Source: Selaginella moellendorffii (lineage: Eukaryota > Plantae > Lycopodiophyta). From it: a stretch of 64,000 bases of DNA. The position numbers and the translations under genes were made by a program. The stretch covers positions 248,001-312,000 of the forward strand of contig NW_003314271.1 in the NCBI RefSeq assembly GCF_000143415.4, given 5' to 3'. The notes below the pieces were generated by a model, which saw only the letters and a program-made list of their open reading frames with translations, was not told the origin of the DNA and did not search any database. Of this stretch, positions 10,249-45,882 are shown piece after piece (position 1 is the first letter of the stretch; each line of letters begins with the position of its first letter).

Positions 10249-13101
10249 TCAAGCTCCTGGTCCATTTTCCACAGCCGTATACATCAAGGAGGCATTGGGC
10301 CCGTCACTCCGAGATAGTACACCTTTCAACTGGCTGACATAAAATACCGGATGAATTTTCACCCCAGCTGGCAGCCGCACCCGATAAGCCGCTTTACCAA
10401 TGCGCTCCAGCACTTCATATGGACCAGCATAGCGATGGGAGAGTTTATCACTCTTCCCTATCCGTAAAGGCACCAAGGTGTTCCGCCGCTCACTTGACGG
10501 AAAGATCACTCGCACGAAGACGAGATCACCCACCTTATATTCCCGGAATTGGCGATGCTCATTAGCAAACTTCTCCGCTCTATCCTGAGCTGCTTGCAAA
10601 TTCCGTTTGCATACCACCAGAATCTCATCAAGTTCTGTGGCCAGATCAGTTGCCTCGGAATCAAGCTTTTCTTGAACATCCTTACTCAAATGCAATCCCA
10701 ACTCCACCGCTGTTCGAGGATGCCTTCCAAACATCGCAAAGTAAGGACTTAGCTTGGTTCCACTGTGTTGGCTATTGTTGTAAGCAAATTGCACCAACGG
10801 AAGATATAGATCCCACTGTCCTTGCCTTTGACCAATGCTACAACGTAGCATATCCTCCACCACCTGATTCACACGCTCAGTTTGCCCATCCGTCTGAGGA
10901 TGATCTCCACTCGAGAGTTTCAAAGTCACTTGCATAGCCTTTGCAAAACTTTTCCAAAATCCACTGGTGAACTTTGAATCTCGATCACTAATGATGTCCT
11001 CCGGCAAACCAAAATCAGGAAAAACCTTCTCCAAGTAAACCGCAGCCAAGTCTGAGGCAGTGACAGTCTTCCGAAGAGCCAACAACCGCACATACTTCGT
11101 CAACCGATCTACTATGACCCATACTTGCTCCTTTTGCCTCTGTGTTCGTGGCAAACAAGTGATGAAGTCCATAGAGATACTACACCAACGGCTCTGAGGA
11201 ATAGGTAAAGGTTGCAAAAGTCCCCCCGGCTTCTCCCGTGGCACCTTAACCCGCTGACAAAGCTCGCATGATTTACAATACTTGAGGATATCAGCCTTCA
11301 TATTCCTCCAATAAAAGTTGCGCTTAATCAACTCATACGTCTTCTTCCCCCCAAAATGACCGGCCTCTGGACGATCATGATAGTGGAATAAAACTTGAGT
11401 AATTAACGCATCCACCCGTGGCAAATAGACACGGCCATTGTAGTAGAGAATCCCATCCACCAATGAGAAAGGAGCTTCCATCTGGTCTCGCAAAGAGGCC
11501 ACCTCAGCATCCTGAGCCTGAGCATGCTCAACCAACTGCCCAAACTCGCTGACCACCTTACTCAAATGATGACAAAATCGTGTTCGTAACATCGTCACAC
11601 GACGAACACGAGATAAAGCATCCGCCACCACATTTGATTTTCCCGGACGATGCTCAATAGGAAACTCCCCAAACTCCATGAGTTTGACCATCCAACGAGC
11701 TTGCCTAGTGTTCAACTCCTTCTGTGTGAAAAGATACACAAGTGGTTTGTGATCTGTCAACACCACGAACACTGCACCATAAAGATAGTGCCGCCACATC
11801 CGCAAAGCATGAACAATAGAGAGTAACTCTTGCTCATATGTGGAATAGCGTTGCTCCGCGGAATTCAAAGTTCGACTCTCATATGCAATAGGCTGTCCCT
11901 CTTGCATGAGAACTCCTCCCAGTGCATAACCACTCGCATCGCATGTCACCTCGTAAGGTTTCGATGGATCAGCAATGCGAAGCACTGGAGCCTCGATCAA
12001 CAATCGTTTCAGCGCCACAAAACTCTCCTCTTGTGGCGTCTTCCACTCGAATGGCACATTCTTGCGTAACAACCGCGTCAATGGAATAGCCACCTCTGCA
12101 AACTTATGCTGGAAACGTCGGTAGTAACTAGCCATACCAAGAAAACTGCGCAACTCGGCCACTGTAGTCGGTGTAGGCCAATTTTCCACCACAGCCACCT
12201 TCCTTGGATCCGTCTTGACACCCTTAGATGTCACAATATGGCCTAGATATTCCACCTCCGACTTTGCAAATTCACATTTGCTCTTCTTCGCATAAAGTTT
12301 GTTGTCTCGAAGTAACAAAAGAACCTTGCGCAAATGCACCCTATGCTCCTCCATATTCTTGCTAAAAACAAGAATATCGTCCAAGAAAATCTCCACAAAC
12401 TCATGAAGATAACGCCCAAATACCTCCGTCATCAACCGAGTAAATGTGGCCGGTGCATTCGTCAAACCAAACGGCATAACGGTAAACTCAAAATGTCCGA
12501 AGCTTGTGTTGAATGCCGTCTTGGAGATAGATGCATCATCCATTGCAATCTGATGATATCCACTCCTCAGATCAATCTTGGTAAACACTCGTGCTTCACC
12601 AAGCTTGTCTAGGATATCATCCACACGTGGCATCGGCATCTTGTCCTTCACTGTCTTCTTGTTTAAAGCACGGTAGTCAATACACATCCGCATTGAACCG
12701 TCCTTCTTCTTCACAAGCAAGACCGGAGCACCAAACGGAGACTTACTTGGTTGAATAAATCCAAACTCAAGTAACTCCTTGACTTGTCGCTGAACTTCTT
12801 GCTCCTCCGCATAACTTAACCGAAATGGACGCCGGTAAATTGGCCGCGTCCCCGGCTCCAATGTAATCCCATGCTCCACACCTCGTAATGGAGGCAATCC
12901 ATGAGGAAGTTCAGATGGAAAAACATCAGAAAACTCGTCGAGTACATCCCGTACTGCTGCTTCTCCCCCACACGTGCCTTGGTCGCCCAAGTCACGAACA
13001 AACAGCAAGTAACTCGAAAGTGCTTTTCCATTACGACAAGCCCGCTTCAAAGATGTAGCAGAGAGCATAACAACTGGTGGTTGACGCCCTCGCCAAACCA
13101 C
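10249..13101 (-). CDS. Gypsy pol: reverse transcriptase, RNase H, integrase
   Basis: 950-aa ORF with RMCIDYRALN, KIDLRSGYHQ, MPFGLTNAP, FLDDIL, CDAS, TDHKPL, ADALSR, HHCC, SMDF, SDRD, GQTER and a GPY motif. Confidence 0.97.
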   Translation of the reverse strand: MVWRGRQPPVVMLSATSLKRACRNGKALSSYLLFVRDLGDQGTCGGEAAVRDVLDEFSDVFPSELPHGLPPLRGVEHGITLEPGTRPIYRRPFRLSYAEEQEVQRQVKELLEFGFIQPSKSPFGAPVLLVKKKDGSMRMCIDYRALNKKTVKDKMPMPRVDDILDKLGEARVFTKIDLRSGYHQIAMDDASISKTAFNTSFGHFEFTVMPFGLTNAPATFTRLMTEVFGRYLHEFVEIFLDDILVFSKNMEEHRVHLRKVLLLLRDNKLYAKKSKCEFAKSEVEYLGHIVTSKGVKTDPRKVAVVENWPTPTTVAELRSFLGMASYYRRFQHKFAEVAIPLTRLLRKNVPFEWKTPQEESFVALKRLLIEAPVLRIADPSKPYEVTCDASGYALGGVLMQEGQPIAYESRTLNSAEQRYSTYEQELLSIVHALRMWRHYLYGAVFVVLTDHKPLVYLFTQKELNTRQARWMVKLMEFGEFPIEHRPGKSNVVADALSRVRRVTMLRTRFCHHLSKVVSEFGQLVEHAQAQDAEVASLRDQMEAPFSLVDGILYYNGRVYLPRVDALITQVLFHYHDRPEAGHFGGKKTYELIKRNFYWRNMKADILKYCKSCELCQRVKVPREKPGGLLQPLPIPQSRWCSISMDFITCLPRTQRQKEQVWVIVDRLTKYVRLLALRKTVTASDLAAVYLEKVFPDFGLPEDIISDRDSKFTSGFWKSFAKAMQVTLKLSSGDHPQTDGQTERVNQVVEDMLRCSIGQRQGQWDLYLPLVQFAYNNSQHSGTKLSPYFAMFGRHPRTAVELGLHLSKDVQEKLDSEATDLATELDEILVVCKRNLQAAQDRAEKFANEHRQFREYKVGDLVFVRVIFPSSERRNTLVPLRIGKSDKLSHRYAGPYEVLERIGKAAYRVRLPAGVKIHPVFYVSQLKGVLSRSDGPNASLMYTAVENGPGA

Positions 13102-14300
13102 ACATCTTTAACTCCACCATACTCCAGCGAGATACGCTTAATGCTCCACTTTATCTCTGGATCCACCTTCACCAACCATGGCATCCCAAGAATGAGATCC
13201 ACACGATGGATATCCGCGAGATAAAAAGTCTCCACAAGTGTGGTTTTGCCAACCAACACTTCCAGCCCCTCGACACAAGCATCGAAATGCTGAGCAGAGG
13301 TAGCTGCACCTTCCACTGTGTATGGAAGAACTCCACGTGTGTTCAGGCGATGCTCCTCAACAAACTTTGCCGAAACAAAGTTGTCATCGCTCCCACTATC
13401 CAGTAAAATCCGCACTGGATCGCCACGGAACACGCCCTCCAGCATTAAAGCTGATTCACGCGTATCCTCAAGCTCCATCTTGTTCCACACACAGTTGAGC
13501 TGACGAGCAACGATCGAAAGTCGCTTCCTCCGACCGGAATGGTCGGTCTCCTCCTCCTCACGCTGCAAAGTTTGCAACTTTTTAGTATCGGACTTACCGT
13601 GAGAAAAAGATTGGCCATTCTTCTTGTCCTGCTGCTTGTTCTTTAACTGCGGACAATCAGCCTTGTAGTGTCCAAGTTCGCCGCAATGATGACAACCCTG
13701 TCTATAATTCTTCACAAAGAACTTCTGCTTCTTGGACCCCTTTGCATCTGAAGTAGTCACCACTGACTTCAACTTGTGATGCTTGTTCCCATCCTTGTGT
13801 CCACGGCGATCATCACGACGATTCTCGACAGAAGGACTCCGCGAACGCTTGCGAGACTTGTGCTTGTCATTCAATCCTGGTCCATCTTCCACAGCCGTAT
13901 ACATCAAGCCGTATACTTCATATGGACCAGCATATCGATGGGAGAGTTTATCACTCTTCCCTATCCGTAAAGGCACCAAGGTGTTCCGCCGCTCACTTGA
14001 CGGAAAGATCACTCGCACGAAGACGAGATCACCCACCTTATATTCCCGGAATTGGCGATGCTCATTAGCAAACTTCTCCGCTCTATCCTGAGCTGCTTGC
14101 AAATTCCGTTTGCATACCACCAGAATCTCATCAAGTTCTGTGGCCAGATCAGTTGCCTCAGAATCAAGCTTTTCTTGAACGTCCTTACTCAAATGCAATC
14201 CCAACTCCACCGCTGTTCGAGGATGCCTTCCAAACATCGCAAAGTAAGGACTTAGCTTGGTTCCACTGTGTTGGCTATTGTTGTAAGCAAATTGCACCAA
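13047..14300 (-). CDS. Chimeric ORF: integrase C-terminus fused to gag CCHC knuckle and aspartic protease
   Basis: The N-part repeats the integrase tail of the pol ORF. It is followed by CHHCGELGHYKADC, LLDSGS and DLILGMPWL. It is frameshifted relative to pol near 13100. Confidence 0.85.
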   Translation of the reverse strand: MVQFAYNNSQHSGTKLSPYFAMFGRHPRTAVELGLHLSKDVQEKLDSEATDLATELDEILVVCKRNLQAAQDRAEKFANEHRQFREYKVGDLVFVRVIFPSSERRNTLVPLRIGKSDKLSHRYAGPYEVYGLMYTAVEDGPGLNDKHKSRKRSRSPSVENRRDDRRGHKDGNKHHKLKSVVTTSDAKGSKKQKFFVKNYRQGCHHCGELGHYKADCPQLKNKQQDKKNGQSFSHGKSDTKKLQTLQREEEETDHSGRRKRLSIVARQLNCVWNKMELEDTRESALMLEGVFRGDPVRILLDSGSDDNFVSAKFVEEHRLNTRGVLPYTVEGAATSAQHFDACVEGLEVLVGKTTLVETFYLADIHRVDLILGMPWLVKVDPEIKWSIKRISLEYGGVKDVWFGEGVNHQLLCSLLHL

Positions 14301-14490
14301 CGGAAGATATAGATCCCACTATCCTTGCCTTTGACCAATGCTACAACGTAGCATATCCTCCACCACCTGATTCACACGCTCAGTTTGCCCATCCGTCTGA
14401 GGATGATCTCCACTCGAGAGTTTCAAAGTCACTTGCATAGCCTTTGCAAAACTTTTCCAAAATCCACTGGTGAACTTGAATTTCGATCAC

Positions 14491-14640
14491 NNNNNNNNNN
14501 NNNNNNNNNNNNNNNNNNNNNNNNNNNNNNNNNNNNNNNNNNNNNNNNNNNNNNNNNNNNNNNNNNNNNNNNNNNNNNNNNNNNNNNNNNNNNNNNNNNN
14601 NNNNNNNNNNNNNNNNNNNNNNNNNNNNNNNNNNNNNNNN
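14491..14640. other. Assembly gap
   Basis: Run of N. Confidence 1.
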
Positions 14641-15700
14641 TCTGTGTTCGTGGCAAACAAGTGATGAAGTCCATAGAGATACTACACCAACGGCTCTGAG
14701 GAATAGGTAAAGGTTGCAAAAGTCCCCCCGGCTTCTCCCGTGGCACCTTAACCCGCTGACAAAGCTCGCATGATTTACAATACTTGAGGATATCAGCCTT
14801 CATATTCCTCCAGTAAAAGTTGCGCTTAATCAACTCATACGTCTTCTTCCCCCCAAAATGACCGGCCTCTGGACGATCATGATAGTGGAATAAAACTTGA
14901 GTAATTAACGCATCCACCCGTGGCAAATAGACACGGCCATTGTAGTAGAGAATCCCATCCACCAATGAGAAAGGAGCTTCCATCTGGTCTCGCAAAGAGG
15001 CCACCTCAGCATCCTGAGCCTGAGCATGCTCAACCAACTGCCCAAACTCGCTGACCACCTTACTCAAATGATGACAAAATCGTGTTCGTAACATCGTCAC
15101 ATGACGAACACGAGATAAAGCATCCGCCACCACATTTGATTTTCCCGGACGATGCTCAATAGGAAACTCCCCAAACTCCATGAGTTTGACCATCCAACGA
15201 GCTTGCCTAGTGTTCAACTCCTTCTGTGTGAAAAGATACACAAGTGGTTTGTGATCTGTCAACACCACGAACACTGCACCATAAAGATAGTGCCGCCACG
15301 TCCGCAAAGCATGAACAATAGAGAGTAACTCTTGCTCATATGTGGAATAGCGTTGCTCCGCGGAATTCAAAGTTCGACTCTCATATGCAATAGGCTGTCC
15401 CTCTTGCATGAGAACTCCTCCCAGTGCATAACCACTCGCATCGCATGTCACCTCGTAAGGTTTCGATGGATCAGCAATGCGAAGCACTGGAGCCTCGATC
15501 AACAATCGTTTCAGCGCCACAAAACTCTCCTCTTGTGGCGTCTTCCACTCGAATGGCACATTCTTGCGTAACAACCGCGTCAATGGAATAGCCACCTCTG
15601 CAAACTTATGCTGGAAACGTCGGTAGTAACTAGCCATACCAAGAAAACTGCGCAACTCGGCCACTGTAGTCGGTGTAGGCCAATTTTCCACCACAGCCAC

Positions 15701-15800
15701 NNNNNNNNNNNNNNNNNNNNNNNNNNNNNNNNNNNNNNNNNNNNNNNNNNNNNNNNNNNNNNNNNNNNNNNNNNNNNNNNNNNNNNNNNNNNNNNNNNNN
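15701..15800. other. Assembly gap
   Basis: Run of N. Confidence 1.
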
Positions 15801-15836
15801 AAAAAAGGAATCGCCAAAGTAACCTCCCCACGACGG

Positions 15837-16385
15837 CAGGTGACAGACCTGGAGATGATATACTCAGAGTACAATTTGCTGAGGCAGTAGTTAACAGCAT
15901 CAATATACGATTTTTGGACAGGAAAACGTAAGTTTTTCTAGTCTGAAAGAAGTAAGGGTGTGTGAAAAGTTGAACTGAGCCGACTGTTGGGAAAACAAGG
16001 CTGAAACATTGCTTTGTCAGCTTATGACGAAAAAAGGACAGGTGAATGAATTCCAAAATCTTTTTTGTTTCTAGCTTTAGACCCTGTATGATAAATTAAC
16101 AGGTATACAGCTTGCAACAAGGTAGACGAGATGCCGAAATGGTCTTTACAATGGGAGTTATGGAAGATGTCAATATAGTGCTACAGGCTGCTAGAGGTAT
16201 CATTTCTATTGTTGTATATGTTATTGAAGAGGTATTGTTTTCCGATACTGGATGGTAGACTTGACAATGAATGTAGTGGAACATGTATCTGGAAGATTTT
16301 CCGCATGAGGGTTGTCAAGAAATGGGTATGTCATCACAAATTATAAGACTGAATTGATTTTCTAAATGCCACCATCTGTGCAAGA
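15837..16385 (+). pseudogene. Degenerate internal fragment of OEP80/Toc75-V, introns retained
   Basis: Aligns to about 27926-28495 with small deletions, frameshifts and transition changes. Confidence 0.9.
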
Positions 16386-30103: not shown

Positions 30104-32014
30104 ATGGCGGGGAAGCTACTCCATTCCGTGAATCTCATCGATGCGCGCAGTGGCGAATCGATCAAGGCCGCCGATGCGCTGCGCAACAAGGTAACGCTGC
30201 TCGCGATCGCGCCGCACTGGCTGCCGATGCCGCTGCGGCAGACCATGGCGTCGCTGGTCGAGGTCGTGGACGAGCTCCAGCAGCAGGGCAAGGAGATCGC
30301 GCTCGTCTACGTCGCCGTGGATCGCGACGAGGACATGATCGCCAAGCTCAAGGCGCGCGGCAACGACAGGGTTCTCGACGATCGCCCGTCGCAGGAGTGT
30401 TTTGACGATCTCCGGAAGCAGATGTCGCAGGGATGGATGGCTGTTCCTCTGGAGGATTCCGCCACGCGCGAGTCGCTGCTCAAGGATTTGCGGTCTGGAG
30501 CTGGGATTTTCCATCTGGCCGTGATTGGAGAGGATGGAGAGGTCTTAACGCAAGATGGCCTGGACGTGATCTACAAGTGGGGGGCCGAGGGGTTTCCTTT
30601 CAGCGACGAACGAATTCAAGCCCTGGAGAAGGAGGCCGAGGAGAGGAAAGCCAACCAGAGTCTAAAGTCGCTGCTCGTCTCTCCGGATCGAGACTTCGTC
30701 ATTGCAAACGATGGATCGAAGGTTTGTTCTCTAGATTGTTTTCGTTGTTCTTCCATCCTTTCATGTGTTTCTTGTGTTTCTCGGTTTTAAGGTGAAAGTA
30801 GAGAGCTTGGAAGGGAAGATCGTGGCGCTATACTTCTCCGGGCACTGGTGTGGTCCTTGCCGGAGCTTCACTCCCGTGCTGGCCAGGCTTTACAAACAGC
30901 TCAAAGACAAAGGTGAGGAGTTTGAGGTGGTGTTCGTCTCGGCGGACAACGACGAAGACGCTTTCGAGGAGTACCACAAGGAGATGCCATGGCTTGCGAT
31001 TCCCTTCTCGGATTCCAAGACGAGGAAGCAGCTGGATCGCATTTTCGACATAGGTGGGATCCCGTCGCTGGTGGTCCTGGGCAAGGATGGCAAGACTGTC
31101 CACACTGATGCCGTGCAGCTCGTTTCCAAGCATGGTGTCGACGCTTATCCCTTCACTCCAGAGAAGCTGGACGAGATCAAGGCTGAGCAGGAGAAGAGGC
31201 GTGCTCAGCAAACTCTCGACTCGCTCCTGGTATCAAACAGCCGCGACTTTGTTGTCACTCACGATGGCAAAGAGGTAACTTGGAAAGTTTTTCTTCCTGA
31301 CGCTGAAAAGTCTTTGTTTTCCAGGTGAAAATCAGCGAGCTCAAAGGAAAGACTGTTGGACTCTACTTCTCGGCTCACTGGTGCCCGCCTTGCCGCGGAT
31401 TCACGCCGGAGCTCGTCCAAGTCTACAACGAGCTCAAGCAAAAGAACGCCGAGTTTGAGATCATCTTCGTCTCCAGCGACCGTGACGAGGAGGCCTTCAA
31501 GTCCTACTTCGCATCGATGCCGTGGCTGGCTCTCCCCTTCTCGGACCGCGAATCCAAGTCGGAGCTCTCCAGCTACTTCGAGGTGGAAGGCATTCCAACG
31601 CTGGTGATCCTGGGACCCGATGGGAAAACTCTCACCGCGGCTGGACGACGCCTGGTGGGGGCTTACAAAGCAGCGGCGTTTCCTTTCACGGGCTCGCACA
31701 TCGAAGCTCTCACATCCAAGGAGATGGAGGAAGCCAACGCGGTGGCGGCACAGCTCCCGAAAGAGATCACTCACTCGAGCCATCCGGAGCATCCGCTCGC
31801 GCTCGTCGTGAGCGCGTACAAGGGGCCGTATGGCTGTGATGTCTGCGATCAAGATGGTACTGGCTGGGTCTATCACTGCGCCGAGTGCTCGTTTGATATC
31901 CATCCCAAGTGTGCCAAGCCGGAGATTGAGAAGAAGAAAGCGGAAGAACAAGAGGGCGGCGGCGCCAAGAAGGAAGGCTGGGTTTGCGAAGGCGATGTTT
32001 GCAAGAAGAATTAA
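30104..32014 (+). CDS. NRX1: Nucleoredoxin (three thioredoxin-like domains plus C1/DC1 domain), 3 exons
   Basis: LYFSGHWCGPC, LYFSAHWCPPC, MPWLA(I/L)PF, C-terminal CDVC...C..C.FDIHPKC and EGWVCEGDVC. Confidence 0.93.
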
Positions 32015-34570: not shown

Positions 34571-36085
34571 CTAATGTTTAGATTTGAGCAAGTTGGCCAG
34601 AAGAACACAAGCATAACCAGCCCCGGGATCTTCCTGCTTTGGATCGCGAATCACAGAGCTCGCGGCATCCTTTCCACTGCCGAGATCCTCTACATTTTCG
34701 TGGTGCTTGCAAGCTCCAAGCAAGCAGTTCCACTCCAAGGAATCGGGAGAAAAGGGCATGGTGGTGATGAGCTCCTTTGCTTGGCTCAAGTAGCCCATCC
34801 TCGCCAGCATGTCGACCATGTAGCAGTAGTGCTGCTTCGTGGGGGACATGCCAAAGTCAACGGCCATCGACAAGAGGCAGGACCGCGCGGTGTGGAGCTG
34901 ACCGGCATGATTGCACGCAATCAGGACCCCGACAATGCAGCACTCGTCCGGGGAGTCAACGCTCCTCATCAAGTCAAACAGCTCGAACGCCGACCGCCAT
35001 TGACCGTTGTTGGCGTAGGCGGCGAGAAGCGTGCCCCAGGAGACTGTGCCGGTCAACGGCATGGTCTCGAAAAAGGATTTTGCTCGCGACAGGTTTTTCC
35101 CCTGAGCAAACACATCCAAGATTATTGTCCAGGACATGAGATCCCGGTCGGGCATTGAGTGGAAGAGAGACAGTGCTTGATGGAACAGCCTTTGCTCTGC
35201 TAGGGCCGACAGGATTGCGTTCCAGGACGCGAGATTTAGCTCCGGCATAACGTTGACTAAATTCACTGCTTCTTCCAAATGCCCGTTTTGGGCATATGCA
35301 CAAAGCAGCGCGTTCCAGCTAACAACATCCTTTTGCGGCATGCTATCGAACGTCACCTTTGCTTGCTCTGTTTTGCCATACATCGCGTAGATTCCCACCA
35401 TTGCCGTCCACGATACCGCACTCCTTTGCGGCATAGAGTGGAACATTCGCTCGGCCTCGTCAAGATTCCCTGTTCTGGACAATGCCACCACCATTGCGGT
35501 AAAAGCGACGAAATCTCTCTCCTGGAGCTGCTCGAAAACTCGTCTCGCGCATACGATGTCGCCAATCTCCGCAGAAGCAACCAGCACTGCAGTTCCAGCC
35601 AAGAGATTGAATTCTGGCATTTCGTCCCAGAGATCAATAGCACGCCTCCAATGCCCGTTCTGGGCATATGCAGTTACCATTGCAGTCCAGGCAACCAGAT
35701 CCCGTAGAGGCATCATGTCGAAGATGGCTTCCGTTTCTTCGTTTCCACCGTACGTGGCATACGCGCTGAGCATTGACGTCCAGGCAACCAGGTTCTTGCC
35801 GGGCATAGCGTCGAATATTCGCCTGGCATTGAGAATATACCCGTTATGGGCATATGCCGAAAGCATCAGCACCCACGAGAAGCAGTCCCTGCGGTGCCCG
35901 ATCGCGTCAAACACGCGGCGTGCGGATGCAACGCTGCCGCACCTTCCGTACATTTCAATCGCCTTGTTGAGCAAGAAGATGTCCGGAGGAGAAGGGGCGG
36001 AGAGGAGAGAGTGATGGATGCGATCTGCGGTGGAAAGATCTGTGCATGATTTGAGCAGCGTGATCGTGGTGGCTCTATCAAGCAT
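34571..36085 (-). CDS. PLS-class pentatricopeptide repeat protein with partial E extension, intronless
   Basis: 504-aa ORF with MYGRCGS..ARRVFD, repeated VSW(N/T)A(M/L)..AYAQNG units, ACNHAG, HYCYMVDMLARMG and W..LLGAC. No DYW domain. Confidence 0.95.
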   Translation of the reverse strand: MLDRATTITLLKSCTDLSTADRIHHSLLSAPSPPDIFLLNKAIEMYGRCGSVASARRVFDAIGHRRDCFSWVLMLSAYAHNGYILNARRIFDAMPGKNLVAWTSMLSAYATYGGNEETEAIFDMMPLRDLVAWTAMVTAYAQNGHWRRAIDLWDEMPEFNLLAGTAVLVASAEIGDIVCARRVFEQLQERDFVAFTAMVVALSRTGNLDEAERMFHSMPQRSAVSWTAMVGIYAMYGKTEQAKVTFDSMPQKDVVSWNALLCAYAQNGHLEEAVNLVNVMPELNLASWNAILSALAEQRLFHQALSLFHSMPDRDLMSWTIILDVFAQGKNLSRAKSFFETMPLTGTVSWGTLLAAYANNGQWRSAFELFDLMRSVDSPDECCIVGVLIACNHAGQLHTARSCLLSMAVDFGMSPTKQHYCYMVDMLARMGYLSQAKELITTMPFSPDSLEWNCLLGACKHHENVEDLGSGKDAASSVIRDPKQEDPGAGYACVLLANLLKSKH

Positions 36086-40165: not shown

Positions 40166-40996
40166 ATGGCAACAGCAGCAGCGGGCGAGTACCACAAGAA
40201 GCGCAAGCGCGGCAAGAACTGGAGCAACCAGGAGGCGATCCTCCTAATCGAGGCCAAGGACGCCACCAGCCGCGAAGGTATGGGCGCCTCGGCCAAGTGG
40301 CAAGCCGTGGCGGATCACCTCGAGAGCCAGGGCGTGCTGCGCGACGTGGAGCAGTGCCGCAGCAAATGGGAGAACATGCTGGGCGACTACCGCTCCATCC
40401 TGGAGCACGAGAGGCGCGGCTCCTCCTCCTACTTCGCGCTCACCAAGGAGCAAAAGAAGGACCTCCGGCTGCCCGCCAAGTTCTCGCAGGATATGTTCCA
40501 GCTGCTCCAGCGCACCGTGACGCGCGGCGAGGCGGACATGGACGCTCTCCCCGTCGTCAATGCCGCGGCTCCTTTCGTCCCCGGGGATAGCTTCTCCAGC
40601 GAGGAGGTGCCGGGGCCGGGAGAGACGCCATCGCTCCTCCAGTTCCGCGAGGTTGGATCATCCGGGACTGGTGCTACTGCTACTGCTACTGCCGATCCCA
40701 ATCCTCCAGCTCCTCATGCTGCTACTCCGAATGCTGCTGCTGCTACTGCGACCACCAAGAGGAAGCTTAGATCGATCGCTGCGGAGCCGGGGAGTGGATC
40801 GTTTGAGCTGGTTGCCAAGGCCATCTCCGAGTCCCAGGAGAAGATCCTGGCGTTTTTGCAAGAGCGGGAGGAGAGGAGGATAGAGATCGAGGAGAGGAAG
40901 CTGTCGAGGATGGACGAGCTGTTTGAGCTGCTCAGCAACATGGCTCACACCTGGAAGACGCTGAGCGAACGGATGCTTGTCAACAGCTCGAGATGA
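40166..40996 (+). CDS. Trihelix (Myb/SANT-like) transcription factor, intronless
   Basis: W(S)..E...L, KW..VA..L...G..R..EQCRSKWENM, SYFAL...KK..RLP..F and a C-terminal coiled coil. Telo-box-like TTAGGGTTAGGG just upstream. Confidence 0.9.
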   Translation: MATAAAGEYHKKRKRGKNWSNQEAILLIEAKDATSREGMGASAKWQAVADHLESQGVLRDVEQCRSKWENMLGDYRSILEHERRGSSSYFALTKEQKKDLRLPAKFSQDMFQLLQRTVTRGEADMDALPVVNAAAPFVPGDSFSSEEVPGPGETPSLLQFREVGSSGTGATATATADPNPPAPHAATPNAAAATATTKRKLRSIAAEPGSGSFELVAKAISESQEKILAFLQEREERRIEIEERKLSRMDELFELLSNMAHTWKTLSERMLVNSSR

Positions 40997-41473
40997 GCGT
41001 CGAGTCTTCTTCTATTTTTTGTTCCCAGTGCCGACACCACTGCAGTAAGTTATGTAGGTCTCTAACATACAGAATTTTGTCTCCTTTGTCCTCTCACAAA
41101 CAGTGTTGTGTCACTCCCCCACAGCAAAGTTTTACGTAAATTTCACACCAAAAAACTTAAGAAATTCATGTGGAAGTTTTTATGGAGAAGAAAATCTGTC
41201 GATCTGATTTATTTACAAAAGCTTTTAAGACTTTCCACCAAACTCACTTCGAAAACTTTCCCAAGAACTTCAAACAAAGAAGTTTTGTGAGAATCAAAGA
41301 TGTGACCTGTGGTTGATTTCTCCTCATAGAAAAGTCTGACGTACAGATAGAATGAGTAGAACTCTTTCTATCAACTTCTCTCAAAACTTGAGAAGCTCAC
41401 GTTTTCGAGAAAAAGGGAAGGAAAATCCGTGGATCTGTGATTGATTGATTGATTTTAAGTGTTGCTGCCTAAG

Positions 41474-44326
41474 CTAGCTAGCATTTTCTTCCCTACGCTG
41501 CATCTCCTCTTCATCCTCGTCCTCATCTTCGTCCTCGTCCTCCTCATCCTCATCCAAACTCTCGCGACGAGCAGCTTGATCCTCCTGACTAATGTTCAGA
41601 TTAAGCCCTGCATGCGGCTGCTGAACCTGAACCTGAGCCTGAGCCTGCACCTGCTGCTGCACCTGCACCTGCACCTGCATCTGCACCTGCTGCTGAATCT
41701 GCAGCTGCTGCTGCTGGTTGCTCAAGTTGAGCGCCTTGAGCGCCGCGCGCTGCTTGTCCGACTTCTCCCTCCTCTTCGGATCCGCGTAGTAGCGCACGAG
41801 CGAGTCCCACTGCTCCTGCGACACGTCGCTGGGCCGGCTCGACCCCTGCTCGATCATCCGCATCACCTTGTGCCGCCGGAAGTTGAGCGCCTTGGCGACC
41901 TGCTTCTTGAGAAACGCGTCGTCCAGGCTGCCGCCAACGTACGTGAACTTGGAGTCCATGTAGTCGCGTATCCGGACCATGCCTTCCTCCGGCTGGAGCG
42001 CTATGTGCGGGATGGACACGTCCAAGAAGAGCAGCGCCGAGTGCCGCAAGATCGAGTTCCACCATGTCCCGGTTGCTCCAGTCGGCTTCCCGTCGATCAG
42101 AGTTACGTTAGTCTTCTCTCCCTCCACCGCCGCCGCCGCCGCCGCCGCCGCCGGCTGCTTGCTTTCTTTCTTCGATGATGGAGGAGTGGCGAGTGCCTCA
42201 CACCGGTTCTCAAAACTTTGTGGAATCGCGGTAGTGAATGCTTCCGGCTGCTGCTGGTGCTGGTGCTTCTTCTGCGAAGACCACACGATCCGAAACTCCT
42301 TGTCACTCTCTTCCCCTTCTTGGAGAGACCCCTCCTCGTCGTTGCCGCCGTCGTCGTTTGTGTCGTCCTCGGTGCTGCTCGAGGATTTGCAGTCTCGATA
42401 AGTTTGCTGCTGCTGCTGCTGTTCTTGCCCATGTCCCTGCTGCTGCTGCTGGAAAAATTGCTGCTGGTACTGTCTAGAGCTACTGGAGAGTGTTAGTTCC
42501 TGCCTAGCGGACGAAGAATCCCACACCGGAGCGGGACTTTGCTGCTGGTGGTGTTGCTGGACTTGTCCGTAAGAAGAGCTTTGCGGTTTCTGGTGATAAA
42601 AACTCGGCTGCTCGCTCGCTGGAGCCTGGAATCTACTGTAAGGAGGCACCGCATCGCTGCTGTAAAACTCGCCACCGCTGCCACCTCGACCATTGTTATT
42701 GCTCGCGGCCCTGTTGTTAAAGTCCGAGGGTGACGAGGAGGAAACTCTGCGAGCTTGACGGGGGAGAGATGCCGTGGAAGAACACGAACCCGAGTCCATG
42801 GCCTGCGAGTCGGACGACGACGACGTCTCAGTGTCCGGCGGCCTCGTCAACCTGTTTACTATCGAGCGAGCCTTGTTCGCTCCTATTCTTTTCACTACCT
42901 CCACGAACAGCGCCTTCAAATCCCGCTCGTAGCTATCCGGGTTGGTCCTCTTGAGTCCCTTGATTATGTCACGTATCCTGTTCTTCCTAGTGCTCGCGCC
43001 GTGGTGGCTTCTATTCGAGGCTCGACCGTTCAGAGCTGGTGTTGCCGCTGGAGCTGGCTGTGGAGGTGGTGGTGCCTTCCGGATCATCGTACCTCTAGCC
43101 TTTTTCTTCCAAGTTTTTCTCGGCGGTGGCGGCTTCTGCTGCTGCTGCTGCTTGCTGTTCCATGCCCTGCTATCCGAGATATCCTCACTCTCGGTACTAG
43201 CATCGTCTGTGATGGTCTTGGACTCGCTACTTCTATCCTGTAAATCAGTTCCCGGTTGCGTTGGCATCAATGCCAGCTGATGGTGAGGCCGCCACTCGAT
43301 CATGTGTGTCTCTGGAACAAGCTCCTGTGAATACCTGAAAAAGCAGAAAAGAAAGAAAGAAAGATTCCAACTTTGTTAGAACTCACGAGAAAAACCAAGG
43401 AGAAGTATACGTACGCTGGCATCCGAAACTTGTCCGTGAGCCCTGTAGCGGTGGCAGCTGGGTGGTGGTGGTGGTGGTGGTGTGGCGGCGGCGGTGGTGG
43501 CGGAGGAGCCAAGTGGGGGTGGTGAGGAGTAAGCATCAGTGAGCTTTCGTACATTCTCGTATTTAAGTTGATGGCGTCGGATGGAAGCCTGAGAGGCTGC
43601 CGCATTGGAAAACCTGACATGTAACCTGATAACCAATGAGACGAGAAAACCAACAAGACAGGCAAACAAGAGAGAAAGGATAAAAAACTCTTGGAGAAAC
43701 AAGAAAAAAAGGACAGGGAGCTCACCACGAAAAAGACAGCCAGCTAAACAAGTCACGCTTTGGAAACAGTCAAGCAAAATGAGGGAAGAAAACGAAGAAA
43801 ATCCAACCCGGGACAAGCAGGACACGGACAAACACACAAAAAAGGAAACGAGAGATTTTTTGTTACCTTGTTGAGGTTCGGGCTGCGAGAATTCCGGAAG
43901 AAACAAGGTCCCGTTTGGAGGTGAAGTTGCGGCGGCGATCTTGGAGGTGGCGTTGGCTTCGTGGTGATGGTGGTGGTGGTGGTGATGGTGATCGAGCTTG
44001 GATCTCTTGCCTTTGGAGTCGACGTCGGTGTCTACCTCGGACTCGCCATCGTTTTGCTGCATCTGCTTTTGCTTGCGCTTGGCTCGAGCCTTTCGGTTGT
44101 GGAACCAGTTGTGGACGTTGGCCTCCGTAACATCACCTTGGCGAGCGAGATCCACGGCGATCTCTTTGATCCGCTGCTTGTTGATACTGTCGCCCTCCTC
44201 CTCGAACAGCCGGACGAGCATCCGGAGCTGCTCCTCGTTCGGTTTCCATCGAACTTTGACGACGGCGGGAGGCAATTCTTGCAAAGCTTGCTGCTGCTGC
44301 TGCTGGTAATGGCTTTCCTCCATCAT
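41474..44326 (-). CDS. WOX (WOX13/ancient-clade-like) homeodomain protein with a long C-terminal extension containing a CACTA TnpA-like domain; predicted exons 44326-43867, 43625-43415, 43334-41474 (843 aa)
   Basis: RWKPNEEQL..L.RLF...KQRIKEI...L...G...EANVHNWFHNRKARAKRKQ, followed by the GESEVDTDVD motif typical of WOX13. GT-AG sites give 460+211+1861 = 2532 nt in one open frame. Confidence 0.8.
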
Positions 44327-45882
44327 CTTGGGATCTGGTCATTGGAAAAACGAGAAGAAAAAAACCGTCTTTTTGAGTGTGCTTTAAACAACTTGCCTTG
44401 CTCAACTCGTTCGCATCCTCAGGCTCCGCATTCTCGGCAGGAAAACTAGGAAGAGAAAACAAACAAGGAAAAATTTAGTCCGGAATGGCAGAGATCCCCA
44501 AAACTCTCCGAAGAACACGAGCAAGAGAAAAAAATTCTCTTTCTTTTCTCCACGGCCCAAGAAAGAGAGAATGATACATGATAATGGCCCAGTCTCCTAT
44601 AGAGGAAGAGAAAAGAAAAGCTGGCCTATATAATAGGATCGAGGGCGTTATCGATGGCACCGGCCCACACAAGTGAAAATCCATCACCACGCACAAATGC
44701 AGGTTAGAAATCTCATCACACTCCCAGCAGCCGGGCAAAAATTCGCGAGCAAATCCACGAATCGCCCACGAAAAGAAAAAGAAGCGAAGAAAACAAACCA
44801 AGAACACACCACCACCACCAAAAAAAATTCATTGTTTTGATTCGAGGGAGAGAAGAGAGGAAGAGAAAAAAAAAACCCCCAAGCAAAGAGGAGAGAAAAA
44901 AAAGGAGACGGTGTGGATGCGTAGCTAACCTGGAAGATTGGCGATCGATCTATCGAATCAGGCGGCGCCGCCGCCGGTGGTGGCGAGCCCCAATCTTTGC
45001 CCCGATCCGCCACGACCCAAGTCACCGAAATTCGATCTCATCTATCCCACGGCCTCGCGATTGCGGCGCGGTGGAGAGGAGCTGGAGCTGTGCGTCGGCC
45101 ATGGCAGCTCTCTGTCGCGCGCGGCACTCTAAGCCGCCATATCCAAGTACTCTACCCGTGCGGGAATTTGGGCACGGCGATTCCAGGCCAGAATCTCCGC
45201 CCATCACGCATTCCGGACCGACGGATGGACGGCATCCACGAGCAGCTTAATGCTAATCATGGTTAGCGGCCTGGGCGCTAATTCCAACGTTGGTAAATTG
45301 GGGCTTTTAACCCCGGGGCAGGTTTAACCGACACCAGCGGTCACTGTCAGGCGTACGAAAGCGTACACCCGCCGGTCAGCGCGCCGTACCACATTGCATT
45401 CATTGTCGCGTATAAACGAGCGCGATTAGCTGCTAATAATCAATCACGCAGGGACTGCGCACGCATTGGCGATTATTTAATCTTTAATTAAACCGCTTCC
45501 ATGCTTAACGTGAAAGACATCCAAGCAAGCGATCTATCTGGGTGGTTGTACAGTATGCGTATGCGATTGGCCAAGTATATTATACATTATATTGTACGAA
45601 AGATGGCGTAGCTTTTCCGGTATTTGCCGCTTGGGCGGCCAGCACTCTTTTCCCGAGTTTGGAATGTGGAATGGGCCCGACATTCATGCAAGAAGCGTTC
45701 CTCATTAAGTACGGACGAGTGTGGGCCATGGCCGAATCTTGTGTGAAGCCGTACAAGGGCAGGAAAGTAAATTAGGGCAGAACTGGTCAAGTTTAGGGCT
45801 CTTGATTGACCCTGACCATGGCGGCGCCGCTGGTGGAATAAGCGGCGCCGCTGGTTCTCTGCAGCTCGCGTCTAGGGCTTTT

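Follow-up and report, generated by a model that had tools for sequence, protein, structure and literature searches.

The window analysed here is a 64,000-nucleotide stretch of the Selaginella moellendorffii genome (contig NW_003314271.1, positions 248,001 to 312,000). At window positions 44326-41474, its minus strand holds a homeobox open reading frame (ORF) and a separate 609-aa ORF, which are confirmed to form a single expressed gene of three coding exons, with a WOX homeodomain spliced to the long ORF. Judged by its sequence, this gene is the ortholog (counterpart) of SkWOX13E of Selaginella kraussiana, and very probably the expressed product joins the WOX homeodomain to a C-terminal domain (CTD) domesticated from a CACTA transposon ORF2/TnpA-like protein. 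The gene itself is already known as SkWOX13E, and the transposon-derived domain is the new part. Contigs of four public runs from four studies (X1, X2, X6 and X11) were aligned to positions 41350-44500, and the features of the WOX13E-like gene are as follows.

44397..44447, minus strand: exon of the 5' untranslated region (5'UTR), from contig pieces and the joint 44334/44397; contains an in-frame stop
44335..44396, minus strand: 5'UTR intron, 62 nt, GC-AG, with ends GCAAGT...CCAG; joint in X1, X2 and X11
43867..44326, minus strand: coding exon 1, 153 codons plus 1 nt; short N-terminus, homeodomain and poly-His tract
44075..44257, minus strand: WOX-type homeodomain, residues 24-84, with His at position 50 (WFHN)
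43626..43866, minus strand: intron 1, 241 nt, GT-AG; joint in X1, X2 and X11
43415..43625, minus strand: coding exon 2, 211 nt; conserved LRLPSD...YESS motif and Pro/His tracts
43335..43414, minus strand: intron 2, 80 nt, GT-AG; joint in X1, X2 and X11
41474..43334, minus strand: coding exon 3, 619 codons plus stop; continuous contig cover
42836..42985, minus strand: helical block KNRIRDIIKGLK...ARSIVNRL, conserved and common only to SkWOX13E
41723..42127, minus strand: CTD, 135 aa, putatively derived from CACTA TnpA-like protein (ORF2); predicted beta-hairpin and five helices; pI 9.6
41477..41722, minus strand: Gln/Val-rich tract, then acidic tail, standing in place of the remaining Transposase_24 region
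41350..41473, minus strand: 3'UTR, minimum extent, from X1 record 1 and X11 record 5

The three coding exons (460, 211 and 1861 nt) amount to 844 codons including the TAG stop at 41476-41474, giving an 843-aa product, and exon 2 is open solely in the reading frame set by the two junctions. Intron 1 lies between the donor CAAG/gtaac after 43867 and the acceptor ag/GTTAC at 43625, and intron 2 between CCAGC/gtacg after 43415 and tttcag/GTATTC at 43334. An in-frame stop 8 codons upstream of the ATG at 44326, within the 5' exon, fixes the start at that position. A further 5'UTR acceptor (ttcctag/) is seen near 44446/44445, and the contigs carry 241-278 extra 5' letters with no match on 44448-44500, which places one or more additional 5' exons upstream of 44500.

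The public runs contain about 0.6-0.77 of the sampled words from 41350-44500, which is the share expected with introns absent. Contigs of X1, X2 and X11, representing three studies, omit exactly 43335-43414 and 43626-43866 with GT..AG ends. X1 record 3 and X11 record 8 each join 5'UTR sequence to the homeodomain exon, exon 2 and the first part of exon 3, reaching 42680 and 42405, respectively; separate contigs span 42425-41350, covering the CTD and the 3'UTR. Contig breaks are confined to CAG/GCC repeats, and low-depth contigs that keep the intron are also present in X2. The initial annotation of this DNA had predicted in-frame splicing of the homeodomain to the long ORF, with a product of about 843 aa; its four splice sites and their coordinates hold, both junctions are carried by contigs, and RNA-type contigs across the 43415/43334 junction, which it had named as a check, are seen in the three studies whose contigs skip intron 2 exactly. 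The alternative acceptor at 43613 and the 18-nt micro-exon (43726-43743) that it had also considered have no contig support, a weak negative because contigs drop rare forms.

The ATG of the 609-aa ORF (43303) lies 31 nt into exon 3, and contigs are unable to reveal transcript starts, so exon 3 might also, or mainly, be expressed alone as a CTD protein lacking the homeodomain. Such an internal start, which would be compatible with the fusion, has little probability: intron-2-bridging contigs occur in three studies, no contig begins near 43303, where an independent transcript start would, by the initial annotation, have counted against the fusion, and the SkWOX13E cDNA unites both parts.

Homeodomain and counterpart in Selaginella kraussiana

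Plant stem cells and regeneration are under the central control of WOX proteins, which outside the homeodomain are not known to carry more than short motifs. Members were recognized here by a homeodomain of 65-66 residues with an RW..P start, WF.N.KAR in helix 3 and WOX domains as the nearest relatives. The domain at 44075..44257 matches the Pfam Homeodomain family at E 2.5e-11, and its top sequence matches among solved structures are STENOFOLIA (5.8e-10) and WUSCHEL (1.1e-6), both gap-free, followed by the next homeodomain class (DUX4) at 1e-3. By these marks it is a WOX-type, but divergent, homeodomain. Position 50, in helix 3 (44110-44121), is His, not the Gln usual in WOX proteins, and the same residue is found in SkWOX13E. 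This position usually determines base specificity in homeodomains, and its conserved state (H50) suggests that base specificity is altered. The PINTOX class was rejected, as PINTOX has N51D and carries its domain upstream of the homeodomain (PMC2775110), as was the NDX class, HTH_NDX being below threshold; the SAWADEE homeobox class was also considered and rejected. A search with exon 1 by shared 5-residue words among 84-268-aa proteins gave no match.

The hallmarks of the WOX13 orthologous group are a 39-aa MOG motif upstream of the homeodomain and an ESExE motif just downstream of it (Deveaux et al. 2008, PMC2584047). The 39-aa motif would not fit here or in SkWOX13E, as the homeodomain is preceded by 21-23 residues only, and an N-terminal extension is ruled out by the in-frame stop in the 5' exon. 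The sequences TESED (here) and TESEEE (SkWOX13E) sit in a DSESKTITDD...ESE block about 115-190 residues past the homeodomain.

SkWOX13E (574 aa; UniProt A0A0P0LAI8, GenBank KR870330) is the sole close relative of exon 3 among 5.8 billion proteins. It was cloned in 2016 by Ge et al. (PMC4742569), who confirmed its coding sequence by reverse-transcription PCR, found expression in all four tissues tested and assigned it by its homeodomain to the ancient WOX clade, with no mention of a transposon-derived domain. The two proteins share, in the same order, a short N-terminus, the WFHN homeodomain, LRLPSD..YESS, DSESKTITDD, KGTMIR, the helical block, EFRIVWSS, a CTD cut at the same point and a Q-rich and acidic end; this common order indicates an architecture that was in place before the two species diverged. 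The homeodomains are about 95% identical, the CTDs 79%, and the span containing DSESKTITDD, KGTMIR and the helical block 36%; the linkers between these blocks are unalignable. The proteins differ in length (574 versus 843 aa), and the surplus here consists of poly-Q, poly-H, poly-P, poly-A and acidic tracts. The helical block, which had been pointed out earlier as a second conspicuous segment, is real and conserved in SkWOX13E, but it has no family match in Pfam or the Atlas and no counterpart among the transposon-protein relatives described below. The Gln/Val-rich and acidic end may serve as an activation or coiled-coil region.

Contigs of X2, X6 and X11 share a set of variants relative to the window in 41825-43531: 12 positions are substituted, GAG is inserted behind 42219 and 3 nt (CAG) are missing at 42437. 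X1 differs from the window only by that deletion; the shared variants probably represent a second haplotype or strain. Numbers being small, the synonymous variants fall in the CTD (D503), exon 2 (L31) and, once, the helical block (F143). Of nine amino-acid changes, eight lie in low-complexity linkers, as do both in-frame indels, and the ninth (T130S) lies within a loop of the helical block.

Relatives and predicted fold of the C-terminal domain

An exhaustive phmmer search with the CTD against 1.84 billion representatives (E <=1e-3) recovered SkWOX13E and 58 distant relatives with E-values from 1.5e-8 to 1e-3 and 25-40% identity, nearly all of which match CTD query positions ~11-129. The relatives with names belong to Riccia, Ceratodon, Sphagnum and Papaver, and so to liverworts, mosses and an angiosperm. 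Pfam Transposase_24 (PF03004) is present in 24 of the 58 (best 1.9e-26) and a homeodomain in none, and the fusion of homeodomain and CTD is confined to one 50%-identity cluster among all these representatives. A word-type search with the CTD alone found no match within its length limits. The CTD-like part of the relatives lies directly upstream of PF03004 and overlaps its start (95-220 versus 195-299 in the relative P0002), and nearly all relatives of sufficient length run on into the Transposase_24 region. The CTD corresponds to the unmodelled region upstream of PF03004 together with the first ~28 profile positions. A profile hidden Markov model built from 47 non-WOX relatives, with both WOX13E proteins excluded, gives 107 bits for exon 3 and 105 bits for SkWOX13E; these scores are partly circular because the relatives were chosen by likeness to the CTD, whereas the single-sequence E-values are not.

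For the three relatives looked up, each of another cluster (P0006, P0077 and P0071), genes encoding Transposase_21 and DUF4218 (and DUF4216) lie 2-4 kb away, and one of the three has such neighbours on 22 contigs. Together these domains characterize TnpD, the transposase of CACTA elements. In the literature, Transposase_24 is the mark of ORF2/TnpA in such elements (PMC8195511, PMC8978399). A recent survey of reference elements placed TnpA-like proteins in flowering plants only (bioRxiv 10.64898/2026.08.24.746577), in contrast to their presence in bryophytes observed here. DUF8039 and Peptidase_C48, seen in structure-matched clusters, were considered as the identity of the CTD and rejected as co-resident domains, as neither was found in any of the 58 relatives at E 0.01.

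AlphaFold2 predicts the CTD (48-row alignment) as a beta-hairpin with five helices, with a predicted local distance difference test score (pLDDT) of 92.7 and a predicted template modelling (TM) score of 0.80. In the ESM Atlas, this model superposes with a TM score of 0.85 over 133 residues (root-mean-square deviation ~2 Å) on Streptophyta clusters with Transposase_24 in 71-90% of their members. The transposon relative P0002:85-323 is modelled with this core plus two short helices and a disordered tail behind it, and Pfam Transposase_24 starts at helix 4 of this larger predicted globular domain (beta-hairpin and seven helices). According to these models, WOX13E kept the core and lost the last two helices and the disordered tail, with the Gln/Val-rich tract and acidic tail instead in both species. 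The Lys and Arg residues of the CTD are grouped on helices 3 and 5. The DNA-binding domain of TnpA has been described as two tri-helical helix-turn-helix motifs (2026 preprint). As a separate observation, the ~100 residues upstream of Transposase_24 are kept from liverworts to poppy and have no Pfam family (P0002 and relatives; L001, L004 and L005).

Domestication and possible function

Within 40900-44700 no terminal inverted repeats (TIRs) were found, the inverted matches being low-complexity GCC/GGC only, a profile search of the six frames of the window revealed no second CTD copy in 64 kb, and within the window no Transposase_21 gene stands beside the locus. Judged within the window, the locus thus lacks the marks of an active CACTA element, namely TIRs, subterminal repeats, an adjacent transposase and many copies. 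It has an intact ortholog and expression in both species, as a domesticated gene would, and branch lengths and the pattern of variants fit constraint. An alternative is functionless exonisation, in which a decaying transposon remnant is transcribed by read-through, and the richness of exon 3 in fast-evolving low-complexity linkers would agree with it. It is scarcely probable, since the frame is intact over 843 codons, the CTD is 79% identical to that of S. kraussiana while the linkers are unalignable, the AlphaFold2 fold is confident, the sole CTD variant is synonymous and the gene is expressed in both species (PMC4742569 for SkWOX13E).

In a maximum-likelihood tree, the two WOX13E CTDs form a clade with 100/99 support, 0.23 changes per site apart and on a stem of 0.98, and the distance from this pair to any transposon relative exceeds 2 changes per site, with transposon lineages on both sides of the pair. 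The opposite direction of transfer, in which the CTD is an old host domain taken up by CACTA elements and WOX13E holds the original, would be in keeping with the known capture of host fragments by such elements (PMC8195511) and with the arbitrary root of the tree. We consider it very improbable: the domain occurs in liverwort, moss and angiosperm transposon proteins, always continuous with the remaining Transposase_24, the homeodomain fusion exists in one 50%-identity cluster only, the WOX13E version is the truncated one, and transposon lineages flank it in the tree.

Several points weigh against a WOX gene with a domesticated TnpA-like domain. PF03004 scores sub-threshold on this protein (15 bits versus 28.7, E 0.028, positions 2-28 of 138), because the CTD matches mainly the region upstream of PF03004, and the homology claim rests on that upstream region of Transposase_24-bearing proteins. 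The label 'TnpA-like' is a putative one, based on Pfam, on where the genes lie and on how the literature uses the term (PMC8195511, PMC8978399). Foldseek against the PDB found no structural match to the CTD fold, and a wide VIA search yielded noise-level hits only (RomX best, Z 5.2; FF, BEN, SANT and AraC-type helical domains, Z ~4); with no like solved structure, the function of the CTD is without structural support. The RNA nature of the runs is a guess, with which intron-less contigs in small assemblies agree. No one contig of the four runs reaches from the homeodomain to the CTD because the assemblies break at CAG repeats, so the full-length mRNA here is inferred from overlapping contigs and the ortholog cDNA. 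The tree has an arbitrary root and weak support (86/64) for the sister relation. The sub-threshold Pfam match (E 0.028) might also speak for a resemblance to transposon proteins due to chance or composition, but this is refuted by 58 whole-domain matches at E <=1e-3 in 1.84 billion representatives, by the 107 bits of the non-WOX profile and by the TM score of 0.85.

The proposal of the initial annotation that the C-terminal module resembles TnpA/Transposase_24 is therefore borne out by the phmmer relatives, the CACTA gene neighbours and the superposition, and all of the motifs that it quoted are present in the sequence. The PF03004 check that it suggested had a divided outcome, as the direct match is sub-threshold and the upstream region of Transposase_24 proteins is homologous. 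Its view of the module as domesticated, not mobile, agrees with the lack of TIRs, the one copy in the window and the conservation in SkWOX13E.

Under the domestication of a TnpA-like domain, a WOX gene of the ancient clade would have acquired a CACTA ORF2 fragment in its 3' part before the species split, and selection may now maintain the CTD as a second module for binding macromolecules. The TnpA of En/Spm attaches to subterminal repeats, forms dimers and acts in transcriptional regulation. By analogy, the CTD would most likely contact DNA or chromatin and/or support self-association, and 'DNA-binding' is a presumptive label for the module on the same grounds. The homeodomain would give sequence-specific binding and the Q-rich/acidic tail activation, and the 843-residue product is proposed to be a nuclear regulator. 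The CTD may even still read CACTA subterminal-repeat motifs genome-wide, with WOX13E recruited by the H50 homeodomain and the CTD together, which is conceivable but rather unlikely; if true, dispersed CACTA relics would be wired into a WOX-controlled network, forming a plant transposon-seeded circuit around a stem-cell regulator family.

The neighbourhood of the gene contains a pentatricopeptide repeat (PPR) gene of 504 aa at 34571-36085 (minus strand, E 1e-63) and a thioredoxin-like ORF at 30104-30790, indicating ordinary gene space around the locus. An intact single-exon ORF of 276 aa with a Myb_DNA-bind_4 (Myb/SANT-like) domain lies at 40166-40996 (plus strand, E 1.7e-11) and is convergent with the WOX13E-like gene, the stop codons being ~480 nt apart. 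Ty3/gypsy-type polyprotein ORFs (RVT_1, RNase H, integrase and SH3_Tf2-1) occupy 10249-15874 on the minus strand.

Comparison with known systems

The CTD shares with CACTA (En/Spm) ORF2/TnpA-like proteins 25-40% identity over the entire 135-residue domain and the same predicted fold. However, those proteins are multi-copy, stand beside Transposase_21/DUF4218 genes and continue into two further helices and the remaining PF03004, whereas the WOX13E-like domain has been cut short, occurs once in the window, lacks TIRs and is joined to a homeodomain. Host-transposase fusions and domesticated transposon genes include SETMAR and, in plants, FHY3/FAR1, MUSTANG, DAYSLEEPER, ALP1/ALP2 and HDP1/HDP2, and Cosby et al. 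in 2021 reportedly described vertebrate host-transposase fusion factors. The WOX13E-like gene resembles such fusions in bearing a transposon module on a host gene, in having lost the hallmarks of mobility and in being conserved between species. It differs from them in that the donor is an accessory TnpA-like protein, not a catalytic transposase, the partner is a WOX homeodomain and the host is a lycophyte; literature searches found no case of this sort.

Compared with WOX13-clade proteins such as AtWOX13 and PpWOX13L (PMC2584047), the WOX13E-like protein has an equally long WOX-type homeodomain, but it has no 39-aa motif, carries H50 in place of Gln and is three times longer. Neither the literature searches made here nor the description of SkWOX13E (PMC4742569) brought up a transposon-derived domain in a WOX protein. 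Host-transposon fusion as a kind is well known, and the combination of WOX with a CACTA accessory domain is newly described here. An ancient-clade lycophyte WOX gene would have retained, in two Selaginella-type species, a folded domain of transposon origin, representing a clear plant host-transposon fusion with a CACTA accessory protein, not a catalytic transposase, and offering a testable handle on the role of the poorly understood TnpA/Transposase_24 fold.

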